Positions 481 through 63,323 of a stretch of DNA of 64,000 nt are shown piece by piece. A program made the position numbers and the translations under genes. The stretch covers positions 31,548,773-31,612,772 of the forward strand of contig OZ037766.1 of assembly GCA_964035545.1 (NCBI GenBank), given 5' to 3'. Position 1 is the first letter of the stretch; the number at the start of each line of letters is the position of its first letter. The stretch is from Bugula neritina. Lineage: Eukaryota > Animalia > Bryozoa. Under the pieces are notes generated by a model, which made no database searches, was not told the DNA's origin, and was given only the letters and a program-made list of their open reading frames with translations.

Positions 481-3400
481 ATTGGCAGCATTCATCAGAC
501 ATTCTATTGATTGGGCCCTCTCGGTAAAAATGTTCACAAAACACGGAGCGACGTTTGCTTTGAAACATCTGATGGCTGAATGTTGACTTTTAAACAGAGC
601 TGAGAAAAATAAGAAAGCATTACTAGCAGGCAGCAGAGGAATTGGTATTAAACCAGCACGTGCTATACTGTATATTACATATGAATATTAAAAAAGAACA
701 AATAAGAGACATACATGTTGAAATGGGGATTTAGATTGTATATTATATCTAATTTGTCTAATAATATTACAAATATTATGTTGAAGTATTCAATAAGTTT
801 GATGCAAGGCTAACAATTCGATTAAATAGTGAGAGTAACTGCAATGTTAGATACCATTTGATGTAATATAATGTACTTGATATCATAACATAGTGTACTA
901 AAGTGTAACTATAATAAATGTGTTACAACATAATGAGCTACTATACAGTATATTATATTGTGTAACATAATTCAATATATTCTGGCTTGAAAAGGTCAGG
1001 TGTAATATATGTTTTCATAGCACGATATATTTAAGGCATTACAATATTACAAAATATGACATAATAAATAAGATAATACGAAAGATGTATATCGTCATGG
1101 AAACTCACAAACATTAGCAATGATGACATCATTTGGCAGCATGGCAGCATCTAAATCCAGAACCCAGCTGATTTGGTTATCTGTTTGCCGAAGAAGAGTC
1201 AGCTGTAGAGTTTTACCAGTTGGAACATTCTGGTCCTGTGAAAGGGGTTCAGATGTTGCACGCTTTATTTTAACTCCTGCTTGACTTACGGACCTAAGTC
1301 TTTCCTCGTCAGTCTCTAAAGAGAGATGGTGATAAAATTAAAAGAATAGATAAGAACACAAAACTTTACTTAAAACTGTACATATGACATATTTGAAAAA
1401 AGACCAGTATACTTATCTAACTTGCATACACAGTGTTTGTTTGCATAGATTTATAATTAACTTGTATGAATTTGGTGTCTTTCATAGAATATGATAAATT
1501 ATAAATTAATTAGAAGTTGTGTACTTTAACTTTCTTGCCCATAATCTTCAACAAAACATAAGCCCATCAACATGGCCGAAAATTTTCGATAGTAACTCGC
1601 CGAGTATCACTATGGTTATCATGTTCATTATGATTACAATTATTACTACTAACTTTGATTATGATAATTATGATATAATAATTTCAGTGATGAGTTACTT
1701 TGTAATCATAATGATAATCATATGATGAAAGATTATTAGGCAAGCACTGAGAATAATTATAACAAGTACAGCAAAATAACTTGAGTAGTTCTCCCCTTAG
1801 CCTGCAAATTTCTACACACACACTGATTATTCCTTAAAAGACTGTAATAGGTTGCCAACATAACTATCTGTACTGATAAATTAAATTATTAAATAAGTAT
1901 GCTGTAGTTGTCTTCCCATTAATCACACATTGTTTAGTTACTGACTTGGCTTCAGGTCCTTGTGTAACACGCAGGTGGTGCAGACATCAGGTGAGACGGT
2001 GTCTGGTGGGTTTAACAGATCTATATCCTGTCCGTTTATCTTTCCAAAAGCAGAAAGACCATTCGATACGTCTGCAAACAAAGCCATTTAAATATGACAT
2101 TATAGACAATGTCAAATTAAACTGAACAACGAAGAGATTTTTTAAAAATATTATCCTAAATTTAACCACCTGGTGCAAATCAAGCACTGTGTAATCCGTA
2201 GTATATTCTAGAATGTGAGGAGACAAAGTTTTTTGATTATCTTATTGCTGAACCCGGCATAATGCATAATGGGAGACGAACTGACTTTCAACATGTCCCT
2301 GAAGTACATTATATCTATAAGCTTAGTGATGGTATAATATATACAAAGTATAAAAAGTGTGTAAATAGAAGAGCCACAACTAACCGAGTGTATCAGAGAA
2401 ACAGTCTCCAACCTCCCAGCAGAGCTCTACCTCAGTCCTACCCAGTTCTTTATATAATGAGCAATAACCTAATTCAACGTAACGCTCATATATTTTGTAA
2501 TAATCATCTGGTTCCCTGCAAAACAGTAAATAGATTGAGATGATAAATATAATCCACAGTACAATGTCAGCTGATATCCACACAGGTAACTGAGTCATGT
2601 GATATCCACACAGGTAACTGAGTCATGTGATATATACAGTGACTAGCTGAGTCATGTGATATATACAGTGACTAACTGAGTCATGTGATATATACAGTGA
2701 CTAACTGAGTCATGTGATATATACAGTGGCTAACTGAGTCATGTGATATATACAGTGACTAACTGAGTCCGTCACCATGATTACAAGTGAGTATAAAATT
2801 TGATGAAACTAAGATAAATAATTTTTCGGCTCTTTTCAGGAAAAGAAGAAAAGAATGACTAACAAATTAATATTGCAGTACTATATATCTCAGACTTGCC
2901 AACAACGTGACTTATCAAACATACCAACGATGTGACACACTAAATTTTAGATTGGTTCAACCATTATATATCAAATGTAATTAAGTAGAGAAGGTAACTC
3001 CTACTCTGAGTTGCAGGTTCTTGTTCTCGAACGTTTCATGGCCGAACATCCTGTCCCACAAGAACTCCATTCACCCCAGCCTCTCCATGTACCACGTTCA
3101 TACACTGAATAATGAAGAGTAGATATCAAACATAGTGAGAGTGTATAGAGGACAACTCTACTTTAAATAATATAATTTACGAACGGGTGGAAGTCACTGA
3201 GAAAAAAATTAAATTGATCTTCAAATATAATTTAGTGGGTGATAACTACCAGGTAACTGTAACAGTCTTGTTATATATTAATAATTCAAACAGTTATTAA
3301 GTGTACTAGGTTAAATAGTTTTCAAGATAGTTATACGTATTAATATATTAATCTAAGAAGTATATATTCGTTTTTAAGATTGATAAAAAACACATGTTTA

Positions 3401-6400
3401 TAATTTTATGACTTTCAATGTAACTTCTACACAAGATCTGTATGATACGAATAGTACAGTCATGTAACAGTACTTCTGGTAGTGCAACATAACTGCTTGC
3501 CAGCTGCACCTTAACCAGAATGAAGCACTTTGGAACTATGAACACTGTAGAAGCTGGCTATAGAATTTGACCCTTGCAGATTTGGAAATAAAAAAGAGAT
3601 GACCTTCAAGATTTAACTTTAAATAACAATCAGCCATTGCAGTCTACTCAGCAACTGAGATTATAGCAGATATTGAAGCTGCAGACCTGAGCATCTGTGA
3701 CTCACCTTTGACGAAGACCGGTGATCCGACGTCATCTTCTGACTCATACACTCCGCTCTGACCATCTCTAGCAAACGGTGTAATAGTACCAGAGTTCTCT
3801 GCCAACACTCGCAAATGTATTGTGTGTTTATAGTCAATTTTAAGAGCTGAGGCTAGTTTAGAACAATCGGAGTTTTCATCAACGTAATACGAACTGAAAA
3901 TTGACGACATAAATTTTTTGGAATCACAAGATGCTATGTGGTTCAACAGAACATATTAGTAACTATGACAGCAGACTAAATTGTGACAATAAAAACATTT
4001 TGGTCGCTACTTTGCTATAACATGCCACACAAAAAGATCACCTAAACTGTGCAAAATTAAATTGTTACTAACAACTAATTACATTTAATTCATAACTTAC
4101 GTAACAAACACATGGCTACATGCAAATAATGCAATCATCTCTTAGAATGAGCTGCAAAGCAAATCAGACCTGTTGAAAATGTTAGACCGAGTTCTCGCCA
4201 CCTCTAAATACTCTTCACCATTTTTATGATACGGGTTTCCGTGACTATCGCACCCAATCTCGATCTCAGTTAAATTGTAAGGGGCAATCTTGCTTCGGTA
4301 AGTAAATTTAATTCCAAACTGTGAATACAGAAGTTATTTGCTGGTACAATATAACATATTGATTATACAAATATAATATACCTATGATGGTGTGCTGTAA
4401 TATAACTATAACAGTGTGCTATAGCAAAAACATGGTGAAATCATGATAAAAAAATCAGCCATTTTTAGTCCACAAATCTGAAAGTAAAACTAATCAAATA
4501 AATACACATAGCCAACTGTAAGAGAGAGAGATGCATGCAACAATTACTTTATAAGAAAACATGTGATTTATGTCCTTCACTGATGATCTGATATATACAT
4601 CGTCTGCACAAATCGATGATCTCATACCTGTCGTCTACATGAATTGTTTTACTGTGGTTATATTCTCCCGAGTAGAATACGGACGGAAGCAACACTGCAC
4701 TTACCTGGTAAAGCTGACTCTGCACTTACCTGGTAAAACTGACACTGCACTTACCTGGTAAAGCTGACACTACACTTACCTGGCAAAGCTGGCACTAGAC
4801 TTACCTGGTAAAGCTGACACTGCACTTACCTGGTAAAGCTGACACTGCACTTACCTGGTAAAGCTGACACTGCACTTACCTGGTAAAGCTGACACTGCAC
4901 TTACCTGCTAAAGCTGACACTGCACTTACCTGGTAAAGCTGACACTGCACTTACCTGGTAAAGCTGACACTGCACTTACCTGGTAAAACTGACACTGCAC
5001 TTACCTGGTAAAGCTGACTCTCATATTTACTATTTAGAGTGAACGGGAAAATCAGCACCTTCCCCACAGCCACCTTGTCGGCCACACCCCTTCTCAGCAC
5101 CGTCATCGCACCAGCTCTGACTTGGAATCTCTGATAACCAAACTCACTATTTGCTGCAAGAATTGACAAATCAGAGAACATGTTAGTTACGGTTGAGATT
5201 TTGTTGAAGGTGACATAAGTGTTAGCGAGTGATGACAGGAAACTAAAAAATGGGGAGTTTTATGTACATGCAACTGAAAGAGATTTAGTTTATAATGAGT
5301 ATAATAGTACCAATTTAACAACATAGTATAATAAAATACAATATAATATTTTAGTAATAAATATAGGCAGGTAATTGTAACTGATAAAGGTAATATACAC
5401 ACAAACAACAAAAATATTGGAAATATTCCTTACAGAATAGAAATATATATAATGGATAGTTTCTACTCACACGGGTTGACAGTAAAAGGCACACTGATTG
5501 GTGTATTGCTGTATTTGCGTTCAAGTTTATCCAATGCAGCTCTTTCTTCTGATGAGAAGCTTCCGGAGAATGTTGACTCACAACTGAAGTATTTCAGCCC
5601 ATCCCCAGAGGGTTGAACACCTGGAAACCAGAAGATTGAACTAAGGTAACAGCTTCAGATACGTCTCCAACAGGTTTCAATGAGTCACACTACTTCCACG
5701 ATTCAGATGAGTGGAAAGCTACTTACTAAATCTCCCTCGTTCAGTAGAAATAACAAATCATACGTATAATACACCTGTATAGCTACACAACCTTAAATAT
5801 CTTTATATAGCCGTATTTCTAATATGCTACTATCAATGCCAATAATACGAGACAAACGATGTGTTTGGTGATACATTAGAGATACTAGGGCTATGTGTTT
5901 CTTAGAACCCCGGACTAAGTTTCTATATATACAGGTTATAGTATTGGGGGTGATAGACTAAGTTTCTATATACAGGTTATAGTATTGGGGGTGATAGACT
6001 AGGTTTCCATATACACGTGTTAGTATTGGGGGTGATAGACTAAGTTTGTATATACACATGATAGTATTGAGTGATAGACTAAGTTTCTATATACAGGTTA
6101 TAGTATTGGGGGTGATAGACTAAGTTTCTATATACAGGTTATAGTATTGAGTGATAGACTAAGTTTCTATATACAGGTTATAGTATTGGGGGTGATATTT
6201 GATTCTCACCCCAGAAGAAGGTGAAAAGTTCAGATGCTTCTACCAACGTCTGCTTGTTGGTATCCACAGTTGGATCTTGAATGTAAAATCTATAATTATA
6301 AGCAACAGAAGCCACTAAGTGACCCCAATAATAACAATAAGTTGGTTCCAGAGATGACTTTTAATGACAGAAAATTTTTGACGAATATTGCAAGATTTTA

Positions 6401-9400
6401 TGATGCCATCAAAAAGAGTGAAAACTTCTTTAAACAAATTTTAAAATAGGATCAAATACACCAGATAAATTGAAATCTTTCAAATATGGCATAGGATCAA
6501 AAGACTTACAAATTTAGCTTTCACAATTTTCTTCCTAGTAAAAAACATAAATATTACTAGAGATACAATTATATAACAAATATCTTTAGCCAAAATTGTA
6601 AACTGAAAGTCACCTCAGACTCTCAACCTCCTTTTCATCACCAGCCGGGAATCTCCCCTTGTTGAAGAAAATGCCGTCTCCCTTATCTCCGCACTTGCTC
6701 TTTGTACAGTCTATAATTTGCTCTAGAGTGGGCTTACACGACCAATCAAAGTATTTCAAGATACGCTCTATAAACGGATATAAAAGAGATTGCGGGGCAA
6801 TATACAGTAGTTGTATTACTAAAACAAGTGCGCTAGCAGAGTTTGCAATGTGAAGAGACTAGAATCTAGACGATATGAATGTTTGAGAAGTAGAAGAGAA
6901 AATGGAAGTCCCCACTTCCTTCCCTTTATGTAAATGAGAAATCTGGCTACAAGTTAAAACTATTACTTTTTCATAATTAAAAAACTATTAAAACAGAGAA
7001 TTTACGGTCTCCTAATTATCATAACAAAACATACATTATATCTAAAACATGAAGACTGAAACTCCTGCATAAGCAGGTTTGTTTATAGTTTCAAAATGAC
7101 ACTAAAGTGTTACAATTAAGCGCTATTGAAGCATCTCCAGCTGCAAGAGTTATGATATGTGAAGGTGAGACACACACCTTGGTCTAATCCAGGAGAAATG
7201 AATCTACTTGTTTCATTACAGCCGATCACTCCGAGACGCACAAACCCCAGTGGGTTTAACCTCTTGTCTGCCATCTTTAGCCGCAGATGAACTGATTGGA
7301 TTACTCGCTAGAAAAAACACAAAGGAAATGACACGCTGTCAATGTTAAACATGTCTAACTCATATGCAAGAGAACTTCATAAAGCCTGAGTCCTCACTAT
7401 CAGTATATGAGAGCTACATTCCTGATTAAGGGGGATAACTCCCTAGTATGATCTGCAGATAGAGGGAATGCTAAGAATATTCTACTAATCCTACCTTGAC
7501 CCTAGTGAGATATGCACACCAGATAATCTGACAAATGAGGCAACTTTTATAGCAGTAAGACGTTAACCCTACCACCCAAAGAGACTTGGAAATCACAATA
7601 TTATGCAATTAACCACCATAACACTGATTAAGCATAGCATGTTTAGAGAATAGGGAGCTAAATATTAAAGCAAGTATTTTACTGTCCAAGGAGCTGCTTT
7701 TACAATAAAAAACTCACGCAAGTTTATAGTCGCTATTCCTGTGAGAGCCCCCCCCCCCCCCGATAAAAGGGTTTTTGTTAAATTGGGCTAAAGACTTATT
7801 CAGATAAACACAGGAGCAATTATGACTGTATGCTCTTCCTAACATCACCAATGGCCTTTGTCTGGGCTCAAACCCATGACCTTCGTGCTTGCTAGACAAG
7901 TACTCTAACCCCTAGACCACGGCTGCTCTGTGGGAGCTGCTGTTACAATGTTAGCTTATTAAAAAGTAGAGATTAGTTCCAGTTTCGTAGAGAGCCGTGC
8001 TGCTGTCATGGCAACATATGAAAGCATGTGTGGAAGAGTCATGGGTAAACTCAACACACAACTACTGCTCTTTAGATTTGAGACAATGATGTTGGAGATA
8101 AGACTCTAGACTCTTAGTATGGTAAGTAGCCCTAAATGTTAGAGATAATATTGGCTACTCACGTGAGAGACGTACCCTTCACCGGGTAGAGTTCGAGTGA
8201 CGGCACACTCTAAGTAGGTGGTGATGTAGTGGTAGTACGCAAACACATAGTTAGAAGGAAAGTTGGCCTTGAAGTACTGGATCAGCTTAGCAGGTCCTTT
8301 CCGTATGTCTGTTGATCCAACGACTGTCTGGGTTCTGCCCGTTACTCCTGGGCCATCCACTTTAATAGACTAATTACTCTTGTACAACATTCTACACGAG
8401 TATTATAGCTACATAATATACTACACCAGTACTGTAGTTACACAACATACTACATCAGTGTTATAGCTACATAATATGTACAAATATGAAAAAGTAAACT
8501 TGAACAGTATGTAAACTGACCTAAAAGCAAATCACTAATACATGTGACAAAGGGGCTGCCGATTCTACATATTACATGCTATATTTGTCATTATTATTAT
8601 GGTTTTGGAGCAACATGCCAACGGAACACCTTAAAAATTACTTATTCCCAACCTTAGGAGTTATCTACTCGACATAAAGAGCAGCACTTACAATAGCATG
8701 GCAGCACATCACATTCTATGATGTCATTATTGGAGTCTAAACACCAAGTAGCATCAAGGGGCAAGACTTTTCGAAAATACAGCGAGTTTACTCGAGTCCA
8801 CCGGCAGTATTTGTTGTGAACTGTGTAAGCATAGTCCTCGCTAAAACCAAATACAAAAATAATGATTCACAGTGAGCATCTGCAATGTAGACGTGCAATG
8901 TACTGAGTATACATGTACTGAGTATACATGTACTGAGTATACATGTACTGAGTATACATGTACTGAGTATACATGTACTGAGTATACATGTACTGAGTAT
9001 ACATGTACTGAGTATACATGTACTGAGTATACATGTACTGAGTATACATGTACTGAGTATACATGTACTGAGTATACATGTACTGAGTATACATGTACTG
9101 AGTATACATGTACTGAGTATACATGTACTGAGTATACATGTACTGAGTATACATGTACTGAGTATACATTCGCTAACGAACAAACCAACTTTGAAAAATT
9201 GTACAAGAGAAACTAACCAACTCTGGATGAAAGAAAACTTGTAAACTATGGCAGGGTTAGCTAACTGAAATGACACTGAATCGAAGCAAACCTAACTTAA
9301 TTTGTATTTTTCAACATTTAGAACTGTCTAACAAAATAAAAGTTACTCTCTCATAGTGCCATTGCAGATTTGTCCGTGAACACCTCTATTGATCTCTCCC

Positions 9401-9813
9401 GTGTACCAAATATCATGTCGATCAACGAGATAGTAAGGAATGGTGTCATTCTTCTTTATACAGAAGGAATTTGGAGTCGGCGCAGCACTAAAATATTAAA
9501 AATAAAGCTTATGTTAAATGACAGCGAAAATAAACAGCTTTTAAGAAACATGGAGATGAGAAATTCTAAAGAAAACACATACTTGAATTGTTCTACAACT
9601 AATACAATCCAACGATCACACAAAAATGAGAACATAAGTTGAGAACACATGTTGATCATGTGATATTGATTGCAGCAGATACATCAGCACCTTTATCGGT
9701 ATTTAAACTGTTGTAAAAAGTGACTACTATAAACAAACTGACCTGACTGTAGCTAAAAGAAACAGAGCTGCAACTACAGCAGAAGCTATAATGCTTCGTT
9801 GTCTGTGAGTCAT
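481..9813 (-). CDS. Gene B: tandem paralog of gene A, 5' portion (~16 coding exons visible; continues beyond window start)
   Basis: Signal peptide exon 9813-9743 MTHRQRSIIASAVVAALFLLATV(S). Later exons match A in order and phase, e.g. GLKYFSCESTF vs [31 protein letters not shown] vs [28 protein letters not shown] vs [21 protein letters not shown] vs LFKSQ..C..PC.VDIFT (both 119-nt exons). Confidence 0.85.
2575..2770. repeat. 29-bp intronic minisatellite
   Basis: TGAGTCATGTGATATATACAGTGACTAAC, ~7 copies. Confidence 0.9.
3005..3105 (-). other. TSP1 repeat exon, gene B
   Basis: GTWRGWGEWSSCGTGCSAMKRSRTRTC; counterpart of A 51439-51547 with the same phases. Confidence 0.85.
4693..5018 (-). repeat. 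25-bp minisatellite spanning exon end plus donor (exon ends 5005)
   Basis: Minus unit TCAGCTTTACCAG|GTAAGTGCAGTG, ~13 copies. Confidence 0.95.
5915..6197. repeat. ~41-bp intronic minisatellite just past the donor of exon 6210-6289
   Basis: GACTAAGTTTCTATATACAGGTTATAGTATTGGGGGTGATA, ~7 copies. Confidence 0.9.
7707..7932 (-). mobile_element. tRNA-derived SINE with target-site duplication
   Basis: Pol III A-box TGGTCTAGGGG and B-box GGTTTGAGCCC on the minus strand; flanking 17-bp direct repeat GGAGCTGCT(T/G)TTACAAT at 7690-7706 and 7933-7949. Confidence 0.75.
8692..9487 (-). other. Divergent kringle domain of gene B
   Basis: SFC...WYTGEINRGVHGQIC...HNKYCR...TWCL...ECDVLPC, split across two exons at the same position and phase as in gene A. 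Confidence 0.7.
8899..9168. repeat. Perfect 15-bp minisatellite
   Basis: TGTACTGAGTATACA x18 with no visible variants. Confidence 0.95.
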
Positions 9814-10255: not shown

Positions 10256-13200
10256 TTACTGAAAGGCAAGAAAATCTTTAGATCTTGACTCAATGTTTAT
10301 TTCCGGGGTGACATTGGAGGGATTCACGTCGTGGTGTTCATTTTCACTGCGGGTCTTGGAGATTGACTTTTTACTTGTTGACTTCTTTTTGTGAGAATCG
10401 AGTCTCTCCTCAACTTCAGCATGACTCTTAGCCTTGTGATTGGTGATAACTGACTCTTTAGACTTAGCACTAGACTTGCTGACAGCAGACATCTTATGTT
10501 TTGGTACATTCATGCTCTTGCCGGACTTCTTCTCGTCAGCTGTATTGGAGTTACCTCCCAATGATTTGGACTTGGCTGGACTGGCGTTCTTGCTATGAGA
10601 TGATTTGGAGCCGTGAACCAGTTCCTTGTCACTTTCTTGATTTTCTGTGAAACAGAACGAGTGTTGGTGAGTTATACTCTGTACAAGATGATCGGAACAT
10701 AAAATATTCACGGCATGATATTGGTCAGTGTTTTAATTTTTAATTTTTAAATTTTAATAATATATAACAGGACACCATAGAAATATATTCACTTTAATAC
10801 AATACAGTAATAATATATTACTATAACAATACACTACTATAACAAAATAAAATTCAAAGAATATAATATCTTAAAAGTTTATTAGTTTAAAATCATAATA
10901 AAACATTTCTACACTAATAAAATAGTACAATACAATAACATTATAGGATAATACTTTACTATAACAATATAATTCTACAACACTATAACAATATAAGAAT
11001 ATACTTCAGTATTTTCCTATAATAACACTATAACTCTATATTAACGTAATAAGATTATATAATAATAATGTTAGACTATAATATAATACTCTAATAAAAT
11101 ATACCTTTCATCAGATTTTCAGACGGTGAACCAATACCATCTGTTGATTCGGCTCTACTCGGTGGTTGTGTGGTGGTTGCTGTAGATAACTTCTTCTGCA
11201 GAGCGTCACGTTTTCCTGCAGTAGAGAATATTCAGTATGATTTCAGTAAAGGAGTATGAAGCGGGCATAACTGAGCAAATTTTGACTTTACACAACGAGT
11301 CAAAAAGTCTTTCTATGTTCCTGTTGAGATTCATATTGATTATTTGATTACAGTTGCTTAGTTCTTGTTTCAAAAAGGTAAACATTTCAATAACACATGT
11401 GACTACATGAATGTATTAAAATATTTACCTGCGGCAGCATACAATTAAACTAAATTTTACCTGCAATTGAAGAACGTCTGAACTCAACTTTGTCTTTAAT
11501 TTCTCGATCATCAAACTCTGTGGAATTTTTCAGTTCATCTGTTAAAACATCACAAAACACTGCAGACCAGTGATGGCTTGAGATTGATTGTCAAAAAAAA
11601 ACCACTCTTTGAGCAAACATCTACTAGTAACCACACTTATGGATATAATTATTATAATATAGACTCCAATAAAACTACAAGGTATGAAGAGTATAAAATA
11701 TAATCATGAGCTTAGATAGCCACTAAACAAATAGCAATCGGTATTCAAATATTCAAAGTATCACATGAAATATAATCATTATAATAATAGGTACAATAAG
11801 CTACCAGAAAACAATAAAACTATCAACTATCAAACAAAATAACCAATTTAATATTTAGAATGAAGTATTAACTAGCAATTCAAACTATCCCTGCAGCTTA
11901 CATTCCCTCTTAGTGTAGATAGCTACAACTATGGTGGCGACAATTCCAACGACCAGCAGACAAGAGACGATAACTGCCGGCCACGACACCTGAGATTTCT
12001 TCACTTTTGCCACCTGTTCGTCTGTGGAGGCGAGAGCGGCTCTGAATCCGGTGCAGATTCCCGACTCACAGGTCATGCCGTAAGGGCAGCGGAGCACCTG
12101 GATTACAGTATGGCAGCAGCTTGGAGAATTATCAGTATAAGAATATGCGAAACACGAGACACCAGGACACAGGACATCAATTCAAACAAGTAACGGCTAG
12201 GAGTTAATGTAGAGTTAATATTACCCAGTGGCCCATCTAGTATAATGGTCTAGCACACCTTGCAGGTCTCGGGTTCAAATCCCAGTGAGGGCAAAGTTTT
12301 ATAGTCAATACATTCTATACAAATGAGCTTCTAAAAATGCATGTATAAAACCTGGTGCTTATTTCAGTGCTATTTTATATTCATTCAGAAAGGAAAAGAG
12401 AGGCATAAAATACAACAAGCTGACAAATACAAAGGAGAACAAATAGGCGGAACACTTACAGAAGAGCAGAGTGATACTTACAGAGGAGCAGAGTGGTACT
12501 TACAGAGGAACAGAGTGGTACTTACAGAGGAACAGAGTGGTACTTACAGAGGAGCAGAGTGTTACTTACAGAGGAGCAGAGTGGTACTTACAGAGGAGCA
12601 GAGTGGTACTTACAGAGGAGCAGAGTGATACTTACAGAGGAACAGAGTGGTACTTACAGAGGAGCAGAGTGTTACTTACAGAGGAACAGAGTGGTACTTA
12701 CAGAGGAGCAGAGTGGTACTTACAGAGGAACAGAGTGGTACTTACAGAGGAACAGAGTGGTACTTACAGAGGAACAGAGTGGTACTTACAGAAGAGCAGA
12801 GTGATACTTACAGAAGAGCAGAGTGGTACTTACAGAGGAACAGAGTGATACTTACAGAGGAACAGAGTGGTACTTACAGAGGAGCAGAGTGTTACTTACA
12901 GAGGAGCAGAGTGGTACTTACAGAGGAGCAGAGTGTTACTTACAGAGGAGCAGAGTGGTACTTACAGAGGAACAGAGTGGTACTTACAGAAGAGCAGAGT
13001 GGTACTTACAGAGGAGCAGAGTGGTACTTACAGAGGAACAGAGTGTTACAGCTTTACATTGCTCATCAATCAGGAAGCTTCCAGAAACACAGGTGCACCG
13101 TCCAGAGAAGCAGTAAGTGAGTTGACCAAACTCTAGACAGTCCGTCTCGTCAGAGCACGGCTTGTTGGTAGTCGCCGTTGTTCCCGTCAAAATATCGGCT

Positions 13201-53200: not shown

Positions 53201-56200
53201 TATTATGTGTGGGTCAACTTAAACAAAGCCACTACACCAGGTTGTTTACGCTAAGATAACTTTATTATTTACAGGAATACAAGAAGGTTATTTACTGCTA
53301 ACATGAATAGAAACGATTACATAATTAGTGAGCTTTAATACACAACTACTCTAAATGAAGTCCCAAGCTGCTCTGCCGGCTAGCTACTCAGCGCACTGCA
53401 ACTACGAGTAGCTAGCTCCACCTGCTATCAATTAGTGTGTCTGTCCTGATTGGTGGTTACTAGTGGTGCCACTGCTGTCCATAGCTACATGCCGATGTAG
53501 TCGAACTCACAATATAATAAACAGTATAGAGTGAACCTTTTCGATTAATACCAATAATGTTTGCACCACTAAAATCTATCACAATATATTAGTTAAACAT
53601 TTAACCAAGTACGCTCAGCTGTTATAGTATAAGAGGCACCACAACAAGTCATCTGTTTAGTTCTGAAGATTTGTTTTAAGTCCTCAGTCTAATAGTGAAT
53701 CAGTCAGCAATGATCTCTACTCATTTGATAAGACTGAGTGTCATAGCCACTAGCAATGATCTCTACTCACCTGATAGCACTGAGTGTCACAGCCACTAGC
53801 AATGATCTCTACTCACCTGATAGCACTGAGTGTCATAGCCACTAGCAATGATCTCTACTCACCTGATAGGATTGAGTGTCATAGCCACTAGCAATGATCT
53901 CTACTCACCTGATAGGATTGAGTGTCATAGCCACTAGCAATGATCTCTACTCACCTGATAGGGCTGAGTGTCATAGCCACTAGTAATGTTGAATGTGAAT
54001 TTAAAGAGAGTGCCAGTTTCATATCGGATTCTATTGTTGAAAGCAGCAAAGCTGCGATATCCTGACTTGTACATGGCCTCAACTGACCACTTCACGCTTC
54101 GATATCCAGGTTCAGGGTTATAACTTCTCACTACACCGGACTCTGAATTAAAAATAGGAGAGTTTTATTCTATATGTTAACTACACGGAGAAGTTCTCAT
54201 GCATGTAAATAATAAATGTGTGAGTAAAAACATTGAAACTTTGATAAAAAATAATACAGCCGAGTTTGTATTGAAATGCAAGATCTAAGTATAAGATATA
54301 CTTCCCGATAATACCTTTATAGCTCAATTGTTTCACCTGCTTTGTGGCAATTTTCAAAAGTGATTTATTATACAAACATAGAACTCTAAGTTAAATCAAT
54401 TTCTACAGAAACTAGACAACGTGCAATCACAGAGAAGTATCAGAAAGCAAGCAGCAGATGTATGCTGAACATGTGACTTAAAAACCAAGTGAGCTGATGC
54501 CAGCAGTAAAGCAACTTAAATAGCTGTATATACAAACCCTTAATACTTACCACCAGATGCTGTGTTGGCGAAAAGTAGAACTAAAACAAAAAAACAAAGT
54601 TGTACTATACTTACTCTAAGAGATAATATACTATACTTACTCTAAGTGATAATATACTGTACTTACACTAAGTGATAATATACTATACTTACTCTAAGTG
54701 ATAATATACTATACTTACTCTAAGTGATAATATACTATACTTACTCTAAGTGATAATATACTGTACTTACACTAAGTGATAATATACTATACTTACTCTA
54801 AGTGATAATATACTATACTTACTCTAAGTGATAATATACTATACTTACTCTAAGTGATAATATACTATACTTACTCTAAGAGATAATATACTATACTTAC
54901 TCTAAGAGATAATATACTATACTTACTCTAAGTGATAATATACTGTACTTACTCTAAGAGATAATATACTGTACTTACTCTAAGTGAGGATATACTATAC
55001 TTACTCAAAGAGATAATATACTATACTTACTCTAAGAGATGATATACTATACTTACTCTAAGTGATAATATACTATACTTACTCTAAGAGATAATATACT
55101 ATACTTACGCTAAGAGATAATATACTATACTTACTCTAAGAGATAATATACTATACTTACTCTAAGAGATAATATACTATACTTACACTAAGAGATAATA
55201 TACTATACTTACACTAAGAGATAATATACTATACTTACTCTAAGTGATAATATACTATTATACTAAAGATTTTAAATAAGCAAATAGTAGATTTTCTAGA
55301 AAGCAAAAATTATTTAACTGATAAGCAGTACGGCTTTAGACGAAATAGAAACACAAATATTGCCTTAATTAATCTAACAAATAAGGTTTTAAATGCCATG
55401 AACAATGGTAATTCTGTAGCTGGAATTTTCCTCGATTTTAGTAAGGCCTTTGACACAATAAATCATGAAATCTTATTAGCTAAATTAAAAATGCTCCATT
55501 TTTCAAGTCACAGTGTGAAGCTAATTAAAAATTATCTGTCCAATCGTCAACAGTCTACTATTATTAACAACACATATTCTGACTTTATTCATATCACATG
55601 TGGAGTACCACAAGGATCCATACTTGGTCCCACACTATTCCTAATTTATATAAATGATCTTCCAGATGTAACTATGCATTTAGACCCTATATTATTTGCC
55701 GACGATACGAACCTCTTCTTTGAATCAAAAAATCTATTATACAATATGGACGTCATAAACTGTGAATTAAAGAAAATTGAAAATTGGTGCAATAAAAATA
55801 AATTAACTGTAAATATGAGTAAAACAAACTATATGATAATCAAAACAGCGCAAAATAAACAAGATTTAAATGGCTTTGCCTTAGAAATGTTTAACAAAAA
55901 ATTAGTGGAAGTAAAATCAACTACCTTCTTAGGTATTATAATAGATTCACATCTTTCTTGGCAACAACATTGCAGCAAACTTTGTCAAAACCTAAGGCCC
56001 TTAGTAGGCTTGATAAGTAAATGTTCCAATCACCTACCTAGAAAAATTCTAATACAAATATATAACTCTTTTGTAAATTCTAAATTAACATATTGCCTAG
56101 AATCGTGGGGTAATGCAGCAAACATTTATCTTGAACCACTACATTTACTGCAAAAGAAAATACTGAGAATTATATATAAAAAGCATCACCTTTCCCCATC

Positions 56201-59200
56201 TAAACCACTGTTTCTTAGTTCTTCAATCATGCCTATTCACACTCTACACAAATTCAAATTAATACTGCTCTCACATAAACTTTACTATTCTCAACTAACA
56301 CATCTCACACATAACTATCCCACAAGATTTTCAGAGTTCAGCCTACAAACTCCTCCATCATCAACTGCTGCAGGTCAACGAAGAGTGGAATTCCAATGTT
56401 CGTCGCTATGGAATAAATTGCCTAGTTCTATTCGTGCTGTGGAGAGGGAGGCTGGTTTCAAACTTGCCCTGAGAGACCATCTAATGGCAAATTTCCAGAT
56501 AAAAAAATAATACTTTTTTAAGTTGCTAAAACTTCCAAAAACCTAAACAAAAATCTTATATAACTGTCAACCATCCATGGCTCGGTGCCCCGACTAGCTA
56601 CAGTGCTATTGCGCCATAGGCCCTGTCATTTTGTTTATTTTTTCTCAATTAATTTTTTCCCGACTATGACAAAATAAAAACAAACAAACAAACTATACTT
56701 ACTCTAAGTGATAATATACTACACTTACTCTAAGTGATAATATACTACACTTACTCTAAGTGATAATATACTGTACTTACTCTAAGAGATAATATACTAT
56801 ACTTACTCTAAGAGATGATATACTGTACTTACACTAAGAGATAATATACTATACTTACACTAAGAGATAATATACTACACTTACTCTAAGTGATAATATA
56901 CTATACTTACTCTAAGTGATAATATACTATACTTACTGTTCAGATTGTAAGGGACGGCAGGCGCAACATGAGAGTAAAGGTACGACAATTCCGATAGCCT
57001 CGCATTCACTTCAGCATTTTTTTCGTCTCTAAATGTAGCCTCACATGATAGATACTTCAATCCAATGTGGGATAAATGGTGGCCTAGCAAAAATAGGGAA
57101 CAACTTCTGCGTAGGTAAGTTAAGCGACAAAAGATACTCTAGCAGGTAAATCAACGTCGATATGTCCTGTTGAACATCTATAACACTATATTTATAGTGT
57201 TATGTATATGTATACCTACAAACCCGATATACGTATGACATATGATATATCTGTTAACAGAATATCTAATCATATTAGGGTATATTCTCTTATAATTTAT
57301 TAAAATTCCTATCACTTTACTTGCAGAGAAAAGAATAGCAAAGAAAAATATTTAATTGTTTCACTCAACCAACTAAGGAAGACAGGTGCAAATGTATATA
57401 TATATAGAGAGATTCAGGGGCATGAGCTAAAGTCTCCATAGTGAAGTTGTTTGACCTAGGACAGATATATAACAACATAAAATCTGGAAATACCCATATT
57501 CCTTACCATAGAACTTTCTAGAAAACTCAAATGCGTGCTCTCTGTCTATACCATCTTCACTTTTCAAAAAATTGACCACTTTCAAGGAAAACCTGAATTC
57601 AATCAATATGATGCTCATAAATAATGATGTAGCTAATCAAATCTTTGTTACTATGCAACACTTGTAAACACAAAATTGGTCATCGAACATGATAACTTGA
57701 ATCATTGCCCTGAAATAAACAATAAACTAAAAACCATCCATCATATTATTCTAATTATTAGGAATTAGAGTTGTCGGGAAAGCGCATTATTCCAGAACAA
57801 AATGAATTGACCCTTTTAAGAGATCCCCAATATCCCTTTTACAACTAAGAGTTGGGTCCTCCCAAAGTAAATAGGTTGAACCTTTATATAAAGAGCAAAC
57901 TCATTAAAAAATTAAAATTTGACTGCTACTTAAAATTATAATTACGTTATAGAATTGTTAATTCAGGAGATAGATATTTTGGTACAAGCACACTTATTAA
58001 TAGTTCAAAGATTTTTTTAAAATATTTCTTCATGGATAATTTTGACGGAAATAAACTTGAATTCATTCTTGTGATTTCGGTTACCGAGCAATGCTAAAGT
58101 GGCACTTTAGCATTGCTCAGCAACTAAAACCACAAAAATGAGTTCAATTCTATTTTGCTCAACAAATTTCATTCTGGAAGACGACAACTCCTAATTGTAA
58201 GGGGGACTTTGGGAACCTCTGAAAAGAGTCTATTGAACTTAGTTTCACAGATCAGCAACAGGACTAATCAACTTTATACTCGGCATAAATTAATGGTAAG
58301 TTTGAAGACTCTTAAATTAAGTTATGCCAATCCAACAGGAAGTAAGCCATCTATCTTACCTGACTCGAAATTTGTAAATATTTTCCTTTAGTAGGTCCTC
58401 AGGTTTAGGGCAAATAGGATAGACGTAATGGTTCACATCCTCTGAATAAAACATACCAGCATAAGTTTGCTATAGAGCATAGTATAATACTAGCATGTGT
58501 GTGTGTGCTATAAAGCATAGTATAATACTAGCATGAGTGTGCTATAGAGCATAGTATAATACTAGCATGAGTGTGCTATAGAGCATAGTATAATACTAGC
58601 ATGTGTGTGTGTTATAGAGCATAGTATAATACTAGCATGAGTGTGCTATAGAGCATAGTATAATACTAGCATGTGTGTGCTATAGAGCATAGTATAATAC
58701 TAGCATGTGTGTGCTATAGAACATAGTATAATACTAGCATGAGTGTGCTATAGAGCATAGTATAATACTAGCATGTGTGTGTGCTATAGAGCATAGTATA
58801 ATACTAGTCTGAGTGTGCTATAGAGCATAGTATAATACTAGCATGTGTGTGTGTTATAGAGCATAGTATAATACTAGCATGCGTGTGCTATAGAGCATAG
58901 TATAATACTAGCATGTGTGTGCTATAGAACGTAGTATAATACTAGCATGAGTGTGCTATAGAGCATACTATAATACTAGCATGAGTGTGCTATAGAGCAT
59001 AGTATAATACTAGCATGTGTGTGCTATAGAGCATAGTATAATACTAGCATGTGTGTGCTATAGAACATAGTATAATACTAGCATGAGTGTGCTATAGAGC
59101 ATAGTATAATACTAGCATGTGTGTGTGCTATAGAGCATAGTATAATACTAGTCTGAGTGTGCTATAGAGCATAGTATAATACTAGCATGTGTGTGTGTTA

Positions 59201-62200
59201 TAGAGCATAGTATAATACTAGCATGCGTGTGCTATAGAGCATAGTATAATACTAGCATGTGTGTGCTATAGAACGTAGTATAATACTAGCATGAGTGTGC
59301 TATAGAGCATACTATAATACTAGCATGAGTGTGCTATAGAGCATAGTATAATACTAGCATGTGTGTGCTATAGAGCATAGTATAATACTAGCATGTGTGT
59401 GCTATAGAACATAGTATAATACTAGCATGAGTGTGCTATAGAGCATAGTATAATACTAGCATGTGTGTGTGCTATAGAGCATAGTATAATACTAGTCTGA
59501 GTGTGCTATAGAGCATAGTATAATACTAGTCTGAGTGTGCTATAGAGCATAGTATAATACTAGCATGTGTGTGTGTGCTATAGAGCATAGTATAATACTA
59601 GCATGAGTGTGCTATAGAGCATAGTATAATACTAGCATGTGTGTGTGCTATAGAGCATAGTATAATACTAGCATGTGTGTGCTATAGAACGTAGTATAAT
59701 ACTAGCATGAGTGTGCTATAGAGCATACTATAATACTAGCATGAGTGTGCTATAGAGCATAGTATAATACTAGCATGTGTGTGCTATAGAGCATAGTATA
59801 ATACTAGCATGTGTGTGCTATAGAACATAGTATAATACTAGCATGAGTGTGCTATAGAGCATAGTATAATACTAGCATGTGTGTGTGCTATAGAGCATAG
59901 TATAATACTAGTCTGAGTGTGCTATAGAGCATAGTATAATACTAGCATGTGTGTGTGCTATAGAGCATAGTATAATACTAGCATATGTGTGCTATAGAAC
60001 GTAGTATAATACTAGCACGAGTGTGCTATAGAGCATAGTATAATACTAGCATGAGTGTGCTATAGAGCATAGTATAATACTAGCATGTGTGTGTGCTATA
60101 GAGCATAGTATAATACTAGCATATGTGTGCTATAGAACGTAGTATAATACTAGCACGAGTGTGCTATAGAGCATAGTATAATACTAGCATGAGTGTGCTA
60201 TAGAGCATAGTATAATACTAGTCTGAGTGTGCTATAGAGCATAGTATAATACTAGTCTGAGTGTGCTATAGAGCATAGTATAATACTAGCATGTGTGTGT
60301 GCTATAGAGCATAGTATAATACTAGCATGTGTGTGCTATAGAGCATAGTATAATACTAGCATGTGTGTGCTATAGAGCATAGTATAATACTAGCATGAGT
60401 GTGCTATAGAGCATAGTATAATACTAGCATGTGTGTGTGCTATAGAGCATAGTATAATACTAGCATGAGTGTGCTATAGAGCATAGTATAATACTAGCAT
60501 GTGTGTGTGCTATAGAGCATAGTATAATACTAGCATGTGTGTGCTATAGAACGTAGTATAATAGTTACCGTCAGATCCTGGCGCTCGTATCACTGACGTC
60601 ATGCCATTCGCCAGGCAGCCTATCTTTCCCAACTCAACAAATCGTCGATTGTCAAGTAACTTATTGACTTGCTTAAATCTCAGGTACATACTCTCCAGTC
60701 TCCTCTGAAACAGGTTGCCATAGTAACTTACTAACTACAGACTATATTTCAGACTACAAAAATATCTCAGACTACAGAAATATCTCAGACTACAGAAATA
60801 TCTCAGATGTTCGAGCTAGTGATTATGAATTTGTCACTGTACAGCCATCACCTTACTTACCTTCTAAACAGTATTTTGCCGGCGTGAAAACACCTACTCT
60901 ATTGGCTAATATGACTAAGTGAATTACCAATATAAAATTACAGTGTAGAGGGTCATGTGTGTTATAGCGTCCAGTGTTCTGGTCATACTCAAATATATGT
61001 CAAAAAGATAACTTCAATATTAAAAGCACCAGTAATGGTGACACCTGCCAACAGGTCTCCAGTTATGTGTTAGATGACATTAGAGAACAGTTGCTTGTTC
61101 ACTGGTTCAGTTTCTAGTGCAACATAAAAATGTATAAGAAAAACAGTTGTGTCTAATAGAAATGAAAAATGAAAAGAAATAGATCTACCAATAGTAAGTT
61201 GACAGAAAATAGATCATGAACTAACAGTAAGTCGAAGGTAGGTGGATAGTAAATTAATAGTAAGTAGATGGTAGGTAGATAGTGAGTATATAGTAGGTAG
61301 ATAGTAAGTATATAATAAGTAGATAGTAATTAGATAGTAAATACATAGTAAGTTGTAGAATCGCGATGAAGAGGGCAGAGAAATAGCAGGCATACCCCAT
61401 CTGAATTAGGCTCTTCATATTGTCTTATATGAATGTTGCATTCCATGCCTTCAGCGTGGAACATGTAGAAAGGGAGGCTTTTCAGGGGTAGGTGGTGAAA
61501 GTAATGGTGGAAATAACTTATCAGCTTTGGATACTTTACTTCTATCTTCACATAACCCGGAAAAAAGGATGTCACACCTTTTCTGTCAACTTTCTCTACA
61601 AAATTGTTGGTGTAGGTATAATGCCAGGGTCAAGGTTTATTTTGGGTAAATTATTTTTTCAAATTTTACTAATTTCCGTCAAAAAGTTGTTAAACTGATA
61701 AAACAGGAGAAATTATTTATGAAACTTTCAAAATGATAAAACATGATTTTCAGGATAAAAAAAGAATGTTTTTATAGAGATTAAGTAAGTTAGTTATGAA
61801 ACTAAGTAAGCCATATATAAGAGTAAGTTTTTCTGTTAAGTAGGTTATTTGAGGAAACAACTATATTTTGAATTTTGTTAAAATGCATAGATTTGGGATG
61901 AAATATAAAGTAGTATTGAGATAATGAAGATAATTCTAGCATCACATAGTTTCTAGTCTATAAATTTTAAGTTTATCCAGAAGAAGCACAAAAATAGGTT
62001 CAACAAACACTTATTACTGTGAATACATTATGAAGAAATGGATGAACTTGAAGAGTGCTTATATAGCAGTGGTATTGTACTATCACAGCCTGAATGATTA
62101 TAAATACTGAATCATTATGAATATTGAATCACTATGAATACTGAATCCTTATGAATACTGAATCATTATGAGCACTATATTATTATGACCACTGAATCAT

Positions 62201-63323
62201 TATAAATACTGTGACTGAAGTCTGCATTTCACTGTTATGCAGACGTCAGCCAGACTAATCACCTGGACAAGGCAGTACTTCACAGTCTATGATTTCATTC
62301 TCCTCGTCAAAGCACCACGCAGTGTTATTAGGAAGGTGACTCAATATTGATTGAGTCGATCCCAGCACATAGTTGAACAGAGTAAATCTGCAGAACTGAT
62401 TGTGTCGAGCGTATGGATACTCAGGAGTGCTGTGCAGAAGAAATGATTTAATTGTAACATAGAATAAAAAGTAATTATGACTATTATAAAAGATATGTTT
62501 GATGCCTTAAATAGTAACTTAAACACAATGTAAAAAAGAAGGCAAATTTCTCAACTGAACAGAAAAACAAAAATATTTTTCAATACTTTCAAGATGTTAA
62601 ATAGAAGAAGCTTTTATTTTGAAGAATAAGGAATTCAATGATTGCATTAATGAAAATCTGCAACAAGAACATTTCAGAATGAGAACGTAATACTATTTAT
62701 ACGTTTAGTATCCGAACAGACCTGCAAAACCCCTGTTTCTACTTGCTATATAACTGTTTGGAATAAAAACACACAAGCCTATTTTATTAAAGGATCACAA
62801 AATAATACTCACTCTGCCATTGTGCCATTACAACGTTGACCATGGATGCCATGGTTAGCCTTGCCAGTGTACATATTCTCATAGTCCAGATTTAAATAGC
62901 TAAGGCTATCTACACACTCAGTCGCGTCGTCACTTATGGCTCTAATAAAACAATATTTCAGTGAGGACTGAATATGAAATGTAGATGTGTGAGTTCATAT
63001 AGAAAATGCGTATTGAAGTTTCAGGTCAGCTGAAGTGAAAACTGTTCTGGTAGATAACTATGCTTTGAATATTTTGAATATTTCAACTACTACGGCTGCT
63101 AATATTCCTAGTACTAGTGCTACTACTACTAGTACTACTACTGCTAGTGCTACTACTACTACTACTACTATACTACTACTAGAACTGCTATCATTACTAC
63201 TATCCCTACCGCTGCTACTACCATTACTTAATTTTATTAAATAGCCTACTACAGTTAGTAGCATAAAATGCAATTTACTCACAAAATGGCAGGTAGAAAC
63301 ACGAAAAAAGTTACGAAATGCAT
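10256..63323 (-). CDS. Gene A: multi-exon (~76 coding exons) giant type I membrane protein (signal peptide, kringle-like, 2 unassigned modules, 3x TSP1, Ig-like segment, long Cys-rich/EB-like repeat stalk, TM, cytoplasmic tail)
   Basis: Exon chain joined by hand with consistent phases from [13 protein letters not shown]|LAISDD (63323-63283, 62941-) to ...SKDFLAFQ* (10644-10256). Canonical GT-AG throughout except one GC-AG. A few individual boundaries are uncertain. Confidence 0.85.
11902..12097 (-). other. Transmembrane-helix exon of gene A
   Basis: [23 protein letters not shown] followed by the basic stop-transfer TKR; cytoplasmic exons 11461-11538, 11105-11215 and 10256-10644. Confidence 0.85.
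12228..12300 (+). mobile_element. Degenerate tRNA-like/SINE head
   Basis: A-box TAGTATAATGG (12238) and B-box GGTTCAAATCC (12272); spacing too short for an intact cloverleaf. Confidence 0.5.
12453..13048 (-). repeat. 22-bp minisatellite spanning exon end plus donor (exon ends 13032)
   Basis: Minus unit ACTCTG(C/T)TCCTCT|GTAAGTACC, ~27 copies. Confidence 0.95.
14380..14590 (-). repeat. ~38-bp degenerate repeat spanning exon end plus donor (exon ends 14562)
   Basis: CTATTGTTAAAG|GTAAGT recurs ~5 times, decaying with distance from the exon. Confidence 0.85.
14925..15710. repeat. (AGT)n microsatellite
   Basis: Imperfect trinucleotide run; source of the poly-S/V/L/T pseudo-ORFs. Confidence 0.95.
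18115..19170. repeat. 15/13-bp two-variant minisatellite
   Basis: GTAACACACTGTCTG and GTAACACACTGTATA interspersed. Confidence 0.95.
20655..20700 (+). mobile_element. 3' fragment of the same SINE family
   Basis: GGTTCTCACAAGGATAGCGACTATAAACATG matches the SINE tail GGCTCTCACAGGAATAGCGACTATAAACTTG with 4 mismatches in 31. Confidence 0.55.
21381..21510 (-). repeat. ~55-bp triplication spanning the splice acceptor of exon 21280-21389
   Basis: ACTTACAG|TGTGCTAT occurs three times at ~55-bp spacing. Confidence 0.8.
23572..24767 (-). repeat. 29-bp minisatellite spanning exon end plus donor (exon ends 24752)
   Basis: Minus unit TACTACTCCATGTTCT|GTTAGTATATCTC, ~41 copies; the first copy encodes ...TTPCS. 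Confidence 0.95.
26644..27180. repeat. 18-bp minisatellite just upstream of the acceptor of exon 26506-26628
   Basis: GTATAGTAATGTAGAGCT, ~30 copies; each has TATACAG on the minus strand. Confidence 0.95.
27805..28042. repeat. ~44-bp intronic minisatellite
   Basis: GAGTCAGTAATAAAGTGAATGTAATATTCAGACAATGTGAAAT-like unit, ~5 copies. Confidence 0.9.
30083..31003. repeat. (TATAG)n-based composite satellite filling most of an intron
   Basis: TAGTA pentamers punctuated by GCATCA; ~45-bp degenerate repeats near the donor at 31008. Confidence 0.9.
31483..31670. repeat. AAC/AGC-rich degenerate repeat abutting the acceptor at 31481
   Basis: AACAGCAACATCAGT-type units. Confidence 0.85.
34965..35398. 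repeat. 45-bp minisatellite just past the donor at 35419
   Basis: Unit translates [15 protein letters not shown]; ~9.5 copies. Confidence 0.95.
36202..36612 (-). repeat. 19-bp minisatellite = amplified splice acceptor of exon 35983-36201
   Basis: Minus unit ACGTATGTATAT(A/G)TT(A/G)CAG, ~21 copies, ending exactly at the acceptor. Confidence 0.95.
39228..39400. repeat. 16-bp degenerate repeat filling a short intron
   Basis: CTATTT(A/G)CTAGGTACA units. Confidence 0.85.
39865..40248. repeat. ~52-bp intronic minisatellite
   Basis: CTACACACTCTATCTACACATGATACCTACACAATGTATTTACACTTAGTAT, ~7 copies. Confidence 0.9.
41721..42923 (-). other. Two further TSP1 repeat exons of gene A (42755-42923; 41721-41893)
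   Basis: NGAWSEW...[18 protein letters not shown] and [16 protein letters not shown]...RRSRKC. Confidence 0.85.
42133..42517. mobile_element. hAT-type MITE (~385 bp)
   Basis: 8-bp direct repeat ATAGATGA at 42125-42132 and 42518-42525; degenerate TIRs CAATTTTGGGGTCAATT / AATTACCCCAACCCTG; many subterminal CAATTAC motifs. Confidence 0.7.
44010..44370. repeat. (AGT)n microsatellite
   Basis: Trinucleotide run directly after the donor at 44380. Confidence 0.95.
45668..48955. repeat. 3.3-kb purine-rich 25-bp satellite with higher-order duplication
   Basis: GAGAAGGGAAGTAGAGAGAGATAAG; rare variants recur 1420 bp apart (ATAATGAG 46101/47521; TGGAAG 46261/47681). Confidence 0.95.
49680..50010. repeat. 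14/23-bp AT-rich minisatellite
   Basis: TACTCTGAGTATAT(TAATATAT) units. Confidence 0.9.
50322..50500 (-). repeat. 17/21-bp minisatellite = amplified donor (exon ends 50496)
   Basis: Minus unit ATTG|GTAAGTACTTAGT, ~10 copies. Confidence 0.9.
51000..51425. repeat. (CA)n/(CAGA)n compound microsatellite
   Basis: Mixed di- and tetranucleotide run after the donor at 51438. Confidence 0.95.
51439..51547 (-). other. Thrombospondin type-1 (TSP1) repeat exon, gene A
   Basis: [17 protein letters not shown]...RKRTRQC: WxxWxxW, CxxxC and RxRxC motifs. Confidence 0.85.
53705..53985 (-). repeat. 46-bp minisatellite spanning exon end plus donor (exon ends 53955)
   Basis: Minus unit CTAGTGGCTATGACACTCAxxxCTATCAG|GTGAGTAGAGATCATTG, ~6 copies. 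Confidence 0.92.
54602..56936 (-). repeat. 26-bp donor-derived minisatellite, interrupted by the LINE
   Basis: Minus unit GTAAGTATAGTATATTATCACTTAGA starting at the donor of exon 56937-57083; blocks at 56694-56936 and 54602-55258. Confidence 0.95.
55265..56693 (+). mobile_element. 5'-truncated non-LTR retrotransposon (CR1/L2-like LINE): RT domain, 3' UTR and (CAAA)n tail
   Basis: Frame open from ~55265 ([38 protein letters not shown]) to the stop at 56510; AATAAA plus CAAA repeats at 56673-56693; flanked by the 26-bp array. Confidence 0.92.
58057..58147. repeat. Long imperfect palindrome (45-bp arms, 1-nt loop)
   Basis: Perfect core GAGCAATGCTAAAGTG-G-CACTTTAGCATTGCTC; outer arms differ by 7 transitions. 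Confidence 0.85.
58455..60563. repeat. 34-38-bp minisatellite occupying essentially a whole 2.1-kb intron
   Basis: TAGAGCATAGTATAATACTAGCATG(A/T)GTGTGCTA, ~60 copies; variant pattern repeats at 344 bp (GCGTG 58881/59225). Confidence 0.95.
62263..62941 (-). other. Divergent kringle domain of gene A (exons 62813-62941, 62263-62429)
   Basis: Six Cys in kringle spacing: TEC...[14 protein letters not shown]...HNQFCR...AWCF...DCEVLPC; phase-1 intron at the C-terminal end. Confidence 0.7.
63085..63230. repeat. (TAC)n microsatellite
   Basis: Imperfect trinucleotide run in the intron after the signal-peptide exon. Confidence 0.9.

Follow-up and report, generated by a model that had tools for sequence, protein, structure and literature searches.

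Described systems closest to the locus

Drosophila Dumpy, a giant apical extracellular-matrix fibre anchored in the membrane, is composed of EGF and DPY modules; it links the epidermis with the cuticle and is laid out in EGF-DPY-EGF triads with a ZP domain (PMC2930355). The analysis reported here concerns two giant tandem genes, A and B, in a stretch of 64,000 nucleotides (the window; G000:C2:31548773-31612772) within the 216.0-Mb assembly of the bryozoan Bugula neritina (genome note PMC11480708), together with a paralog, gene C, on another chromosome-scale contig. The three genes encode a family of type I membrane proteins, each ~3,900 residues long, in which a modular head is carried by a very long cysteine-rich stalk, and this stalk is built of two-disulfide modules of the DPY type. 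To our knowledge, the function of DPY-module fibres is known only from arthropod Dumpy. Here the same bead would be used outside arthropods, in a lophotrochozoan, as a membrane-anchored filament with a different head and no ZP polymerisation domain.

The likeness to Dumpy lies first of all in the module itself, a 21-residue two-disulfide unit with identical Cx5Cx5Cx4C spacing that is repeated many times (PDB 1OIG, PF21164). Both kinds of protein also extend over thousands of residues, are encoded in a very high number of exons, end in a C-terminal membrane anchor and show concerted evolution of their repeats. In contrast to Dumpy, the Bugula proteins have no ZP domain, no EGF-DPY-EGF triads and no PIGSFEAST or proline-rich blocks; their DPY-like units stand directly in tandem, behind a unique head (a kringle-like module, three TSP1 repeats and unknown regions). 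They are also much shorter (~3,900 residues versus ~23,000 in Dumpy), and their match to the Dumpy family stays below the Pfam cut-off. DUF7107 (PF23416), which also occurs in the stalk, is an uncharacterised cysteine-rich domain with no described function, whose second half aligns to the Dumpy_DPY residues.

Other described proteins share single traits with the family. Avian CREMP and the Chironomus silk protein Sp185 consist of consecutive two-disulfide modules over ~2,000 residues with 12-17% cysteine and a presumed extended structural role, but their cysteine spacing is different (Cx4Cx5Cx8C in CREMP), and they are secreted proteins, either with or without VWD domains, that lack a transmembrane anchor and a TSP1 head. 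Adhesion proteins of the THSD7A, UNC5 and semaphorin-5 class have the same single-pass type I topology, and their ectodomains carry TSP1 repeats, for which binding to matrix or glycans is expected; they have no DPY-type stalk and possess defined cytoplasmic or Sema/Ig domains of their own, which are absent in the Bugula proteins. The Hydractinia Alr1/Alr2 and Botryllus fuhc proteins are likewise clustered single-pass surface proteins specific to colonial invertebrates. They are, however, highly polymorphic and carry Ig-like variable domains, whereas the Bugula genes are three old paralogs under purifying selection.

A stalk of DPY-type modules

All protein searches and folding runs were made exon by exon, and Pfam matches were judged against the curated cut-offs (TSP_1 21.6 bits, DUF7107 24.6 bits, Dumpy_DPY 27 bits). 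The two genes of the window and the stalk of the complete one are as follows.

10256..63323, minus strand: gene A, complete; ~68 exons, ~3,900 codons, ATG at 63323, stop codon TAA at 10258-10256
442..9813, minus strand: gene B, portion inside the window; exon 1 (signal peptide) 9813-9743, then two kringle-like exons, 9487-9347 and ~8843-8693, and head exons down to 600-442
13032..41478, minus strand: stalk of gene A; 47 detected exons, ~2,756 residues, 397 cysteines (14.4%), introns mostly phase 1

These values agree with an earlier note on this DNA, which had described a cysteine-rich stalk of about 2,700 residues. Across 22 stalk exons aligned between A, B and C, the repeating consensus is C-x5-C-x5-C-x2-G-x-C-x3. 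Within the exons of the gene A stalk the strict DPY pattern occurs 20 times, versus 1.2 times in shuffled sequences, and gaps of 5, 4 and 3 residues between cysteines number 103, 59 and 57, respectively; these counts therefore correspond to ~55 DPY-type units. The bead spacing is exactly the published DPY consensus, Cx5Cx5Cx4C (bioRxiv 10.1101/2025.09.16.676614). Interspersed among the units are ~15 CxC modules, situated mostly near the membrane, with weak Pfam matches to EB, cEGF or hEGF.

Profile and structure searches point in the same direction. Among PDB sequences the stalk profile matched 1OIG best, which is a DPY module from Drosophila Dumpy; waprins and Dickkopf came next. DUF7107 exceeded its cut-off in three stalk exons (35.2 bits at 39374-39715, 29.5 bits at 36832-37113 and 26.7 bits at 33996-34295), and genome-wide it was found at E<=0.001 only in genes A and B. 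The Dumpy_DPY match in one stalk exon falls on residues that also align to DUF7107 positions 26-46. The AlphaFold2 model of the stalk displays three successive beta-hairpin beads (mean confidence, pLDDT, 79.5). We conclude that the stalk is built of DPY-type two-disulfide modules.

Several observations weigh against a close relationship to Dumpy, and some of them against the assignment itself. The match to 1OIG is marginal (E 0.018), and Dumpy_DPY reaches at best 17.3 bits in the stalk exons, its top scores in the six-frame genome translation being 20.4 and 18.9 bits, versus the cut-off of 27. Foldseek and VIA-align searches with the stalk model returned no significant match, because the beads are too small. 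No ZP domain was detected at E<=0.1 in 40 stalk, transmembrane and tail segments, an exon-wise search that a very diverged ZP domain could escape. EGF-DPY-EGF triads were not found, the DPY-like units adjoining each other through 3-residue linkers, and for ~900 head residues the exon-level searches gave no match to a known family or fold. Since both the ZP domain and the triads are missing, the polymerisation mechanism of Dumpy is absent, and these two absences together with the sub-threshold Pfam scores mean that the proteins are not Dumpy orthologs. The Pfam scans of stalk, transmembrane and tail segments also revealed no VWD or other polymerisation domain, and the literature search found no paper on DUF7107 or Dumpy-like proteins in bryozoans. 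The architecture had been called unrecognised in the earlier note; this no longer applies to the stalk unit, which is the two-disulfide module of Dumpy, but it does hold for most of the head.

Two tandem genes and a distant paralog

Genes A and B lie head-to-tail on the minus strand, which exclusively carries the coding signal relevant to the pair. The first tblastn comparison, of minus-strand open segments in the left 10 kb of the window with the rest, gave collinear matches running from 62.9 to 45.6 kb, and the full collinear chain comprises 81 high-scoring segment pairs with E values down to 1e-61. The summed exon translations of gene A amount to ~3,700 residues, plus exons outside the chain. 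A and B are two genes and not one, because A ends with its TAA and a downstream AATAAA near 10136, and the ATG of B follows ~320 bp later. For the comparison, the sequence was extended beyond the window by 60 kb on its left side and 20 kb on its right. Outside the left edge, gene B runs on for ~46 kb as far as its own transmembrane and tail exons, ending near window -46,600, so that the window holds only its first ~9.4 kb (head exons). There is no further copy between window -60 kb and +84 kb by tblastn.

Exon order and intron phases are conserved, as the earlier note had stated: the candidate AG/GT splice sites of A and B occupy identical alignment columns. Stalk introns are mostly phase 1 (27/40 conserved acceptors and 29/47 donors), and most of the others are phase 0. 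The first three exons were read base by base.

A 63323-63283, B 9813-9743, minus strand: exon 1, signal peptide; in A 13 hydrophobic codons plus 2 nt and a GTGAGT donor; donor phase 2 in both
A 62941-62813, B 9487-9347, minus strand: exon 2; donor phase 2 in both
A 62429-62263, B ~8843-8693, minus strand: exon 3; donor phase 1 in both

Six-frame searches of the B. neritina genome with three head exons matched A and B only, and those with the kringle-like exon and a stalk exon also matched contig C8. Examination of 120 kb around these matches placed gene C on the plus strand at ~C8:4,532,765-4,611,000. Its collinearity with gene A covers the kringle-like exons, one exon of head region I and all three TSP1 exons; in the stalk it includes the first exon, position-specific exons and the modules nearest the membrane, and it extends to a transmembrane exon. 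The proposed tandem family is thus real as a tandem pair plus one paralog, but it is not a large cluster, as only three genes were found.

Two further observations concern contig C8. DPY-spaced cysteine-rich exons at C8:8168700-8171000 (8.17 Mb) give the best Dumpy_DPY score of the genome (20.4 bits), and this locus may belong to the family as its fourth member or represent a separate gene with DPY modules. The gene C stalk exon at C8:4592812 has at least 20 dispersed near-identical copies on the same contig (0.2-3.6 Mb; for example C8:1070800-1073000), each in an open frame of ~100 codons, which looks like the outcome of exon capture and amplification by a repeat or mobile element.

Gene conversion and selection

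The amino-acid identity between A and B is patchy, as had been remarked, ranging from 29 to 67% in the head and from 35 to 99% in the stalk. At the DNA level, blastn detected similarity between A and B only in stalk tracts of 120-800 bp (90-98% identical, introns and an intronic minisatellite included) and none in the head. Comparison with gene C separates two groups of exons.

Unconverted exons (A-B <75% identical), n=22: A-B 49%, A-C 40%, B-C 41%
Converted exons (A-B >=75% identical), n=14: A-B 91%, A-C 40%, B-C 39.5%

The near-identical exons reflect gene conversion and not stronger constraint, because they are as diverged from the outgroup paralog C as the others. The alignments thus indicate an exchange of short stalk tracts between A and B through gene conversion, and they show that the three paralogs are old, being 40-49% identical in unconverted exons. 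Head exons average ~42% A/B identity, slightly under the unconverted stalk. Consequently, the contrast between a variable head, as proposed in the earlier note, and a conserved stalk arises mostly from A/B conversion in the stalk and not from faster evolution of the head. The locus is a clean natural case in which gene conversion homogenises parts of a repeat stalk between tandem paralogs and the heads stay diverged.

The ratio of nonsynonymous to synonymous divergence (dN/dS, omega), which the note had suggested comparing between head and stalk, was calculated by the Nei-Gojobori method for gene B and its ortholog in the assembly GCA_010799875.2.

11 head exons, 561 codons: dS 0.134, dN 0.046, omega 0.35
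First 5 stalk exons, 319 codons: dS 0.220, dN 0.027, omega 0.12

No exon exceeded an omega of 1, the highest value being 0.91. The genes are thus under purifying selection, with no sign of diversifying selection between the two assemblies in either part.

Head, membrane anchor and tail

The remaining parts of gene A are listed below; head exon boundaries are approximate between 60.7 and 43.4 kb.

62263..62941, minus strand: kringle-like six-cysteine module, exons 2 and 3, split by a phase-2 intron; kept in B and C at 37-43%
51990..60704, minus strand: head region I, exons ~60704-60549, 57083-56938, 54096-53955, 52909-52790 and 52170-51990; few cysteines, A/B 38-67%
51441..51551, minus strand: TSP1 repeat 1; weak Pfam TSP_1/TSP1_spondin matches, 17.3 bits for the B exon and 20 bits for the C exon
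43451..50667, minus strand: head region II, exons ~50667-50496, 49468-49231, 45659-45505, 44827-44626, 44556-44381 and 43648-43451; A/B 29-51%
42922-42755 and 41894-41721, minus strand: TSP1 repeats 2 and 3; Pfam TSP_1 15.7 and 16 bits, below the cut-off
11902..12097, minus strand: transmembrane exon; helix ~11980-11915 followed by TKRE, 51% identical to B with the helix conserved
10256..11554, minus strand: cytoplasmic tail in three exons (11554-11463, 11215-~11105 and ~10646-10256); conserved RRSS-containing motif next to the membrane, followed by a low-complexity end rich in Ser and Lys

The predicted head of ~1,100 residues consists of a six-cysteine kringle-like module, ~500 residues of unknown fold, one TSP1 repeat, ~380 residues of unknown fold and two further TSP1 repeats. 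In the first module the six cysteines and local motifs resembling a kringle are kept in A, B and C. Its identification as a kringle in the earlier note was not confirmed: the exons of the three genes gave no Pfam match at E<=1, and a three-paralog profile of the second half found no kringle among its matches in 177,635 PDB sequences. The spacing between the third and fourth cysteines is 19-24 residues; in a canonical kringle it is ~11. The AlphaFold2 model of the second half, a half-domain encoded in one exon, reached a pLDDT of 58 and had no Foldseek match.

Head region I had been taken for two copies of one unit (X-X), but BLASTP between the putative halves finds no similarity. Pfam gave no match for this region in the exons of A or C, and ESM Atlas look-alikes of one of its exons yielded nothing usable. 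The three TSP1 repeats, by contrast, were borne out, the homologous exons in the part with repeats 2 and 3 exceeding the cut-off at 43.4 bits in C and 21.8 bits in B; the gene A exons score below it (13.6-16 bits), yet carry the W-x-x-W and C-S-x-x-C-G motifs. Of an Ig-like domain there are weak hints only. They come from exon 44827-44626, the most conserved of the head (55% A/B), whose five-sequence profile gave non-significant PDB matches (E 0.07-2.6), 7 of 10 to the Ig superfamily; the exon has no Pfam match, and the canonical Ig cysteine is replaced. A PDB profile search with the 45.6-kb exon gave no matches. The ~900 head residues without a known family at exon level are a reasonable target for structure prediction.

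The signal peptide, single transmembrane helix and tail described in the earlier note were recovered in both A and B, the signal peptide being typical as read from the sequence, and gene C has an equivalent transmembrane exon. All three genes encode a hydrophobic helix of 22 residues with basic residues after it. On the cytoplasmic side, the juxtamembrane motif is 75% identical between A and B, and the tail of ~200 residues contains no Pfam family and no known signalling domain.

Probable function and alternative explanations

On balance, we favour the view that these proteins act as mechanical tethers or adhesion filaments linking the epithelium to the extracellular matrix or cuticle, and not as signalling or allorecognition receptors, although this view is only somewhat the better bet. 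By analogy with Dumpy, the stalk would be a stiff, extended, disulfide-locked filament, with a length on the order of 0.1 micrometre if scaled from the published length of Dumpy. It would hold the TSP1-bearing head far from the membrane, where the head could bind matrix, cuticle or another surface. Given an extended stalk and a distal TSP1 head, a tether or adhesion filament would be the most likely role. The family would then be a concrete candidate for the attachment of bryozoan epithelium to cuticle or matrix. The earlier note had proposed a cluster of recognition or adhesion receptors; its giant single-pass surface proteins, in which a long disulfide-bonded stalk carries a modular head, are real, and the adhesion part of the proposal is plausible for them.

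The self/non-self analogy drawn in the same note is unsupported. Allorecognition or kin-recognition receptors of the Alr or sponge aggregation factor type, on which the stalk would merely present diverged heads, could account for tandem, diverged, lineage-restricted single-pass surface proteins with heads 29-67% identical, and B. neritina is a colonial animal in which kin-biased larval settlement has been reported. However, there are just three genes genome-wide, two of them in tandem, and the head omega of 0.35, with no exon above 1 between two assemblies, is not that of a diversifying locus. Moreover, the contrast between head and stalk is accounted for by stalk conversion, the heads of A, B and C have diverged from one another to about the same extent, as expected of old paralogs more than of fast-turnover alleles, and no clear Ig array is present, so we consider allorecognition quite unlikely. 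A variant with a slightly slimmer chance would be a bryozoan-specific recognition system, in which the heads serve as partner-specific binding modules (in colony fusion, kin-biased larval settlement or symbiont handling) and gene conversion keeps the DPY stalks uniform, holding the heads at equal height; if true, this architecture would be unlike any described allorecognition or immune receptor.

A structural role could also be exerted after release from the cell, the ectodomain being shed into cuticle, adhesive or egg/larval envelopes and the transmembrane helix serving for delivery only. Dumpy is itself processed from a membrane precursor, and long consecutive runs of two-disulfide modules, as in CREMP, as well as a stalk with 14% cysteine, would suit such a component. 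Nevertheless, the membrane-adjacent sequence, as read, shows no conspicuous cleavage motif, the conservation of the juxtamembrane cytoplasmic motif (75% A/B) suggests that the anchor matters, and the scanned segments contain no ZP, VWD or other polymerisation domain; shedding thus seems improbable, if worth keeping in view. The six-cysteine N-terminal pattern of all three paralogs and their single-pass topology would also allow a signalling receptor of the kringle type (Kremen/ROR-like), binding a soluble ligand through the kringle-like module. That reading is very improbable, as the kringle identity lacks Pfam, PDB-profile or fold support, the exons show no WSC, CUB, Frizzled or kinase domain in Pfam scans, the tail has no known signalling domain, and a stalk of 2,750 residues is hard to square with co-receptor function. 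Finally, introns packed with minisatellites might raise the suspicion of an assembly duplication or decaying pseudogenes. An artefact of this kind is barely credible: frames are open across ~65 exons, the paralogs have kept their splice sites, and dN/dS lies well under 1. Moreover, most exons of A and B are 50-70% different, so that the two genes are not haplotigs, and an independent assembly carries the gene B ortholog. Assembly duplication was rejected on the last two grounds. Among these possibilities, the tether or adhesion filament is the reading that we prefer.

Relatives in other assemblies

A profile search with head exon 44827-44626 against 1.84 billion proteins produced 8 matches, of which 3 were real, all of them exon-sized open reading frames. 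One lies in the 2020 B. neritina draft, GCA_010799875.2 (PMC7576161), on contig VXIV02002117.1; this contig is the ortholog of gene B, with 80-93% nucleotide identity, introns included. The other two come from AT-rich contigs, in a Logan run and in ENA metagenome assemblies. These contigs keep the exon order 45.6k / 44.8k / 43.6k / TSP1 within 4.5 kb, and therefore relatives exist in at least two other genomes. The exhaustive HMMER search with this single most conserved head exon found no full-length annotated orthologs, a scan of JGI metagenomes found no relatives, and a word search for spliced fragments around TSP1 repeat 1 found none. As far as one head exon shows, the lineage restriction suggested earlier is upheld, the matches being confined to the B. 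neritina draft and the two AT-rich contig sources.

The two B. neritina assemblies differ by 7-20% of nucleotides at this locus (window 9169 to -23464), introns included, and several large introns are much shorter in GCA_010799875.2. Both features fit different members of the B. neritina species complex, and GCA_010799875.2 is probably such a different member.

Repeats and a retrotransposon remnant in the introns

The window has a G+C content of 36% and abounds in mini- and microsatellites. Many introns of A, B and C open with minisatellites whose unit holds the exon end and the splice donor (window 4-481, 4692-5018, 53706-53988, 14362-14589 and others; C8:4533700-4543499), and one such array of gene C is longer than 10 kb. 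GTAAGT occurs 136 times on the gene strand and 31 times on the opposite strand.

Two kinds of repeat imitate coding sequence. At 45668-48950 lies a 3.3-kb minisatellite with a 25-bp unit in ~128 copies, with almost no C in its plus strand (GC skew 1.0), which produces long spurious open frames on the minus strand; a coding interpretation of this purine-only array was rejected, and it is an intronic minisatellite. Long (GTA)n/(AGT)n microsatellites at 14996-15712, 44042-44370 and 63086-63181 are also intronic and, if taken to be coding, would be translated as poly-Thr, poly-Ser or poly-Leu. A poly-Thr or mucin reading of the tract at 14996-15712 was rejected because gene B has only ~150 bp at the same place.

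An open frame of 419 codons at 55251-56507 on the plus strand, antisense within a head intron of gene A, encodes a reverse-transcriptase domain (Pfam RVT_1, E 5.7e-32). Minisatellites with 26-bp units lie on both sides of this frame, at 54603-55258 and 56692-56937, and it is probably the remnant of a non-LTR retrotransposon.

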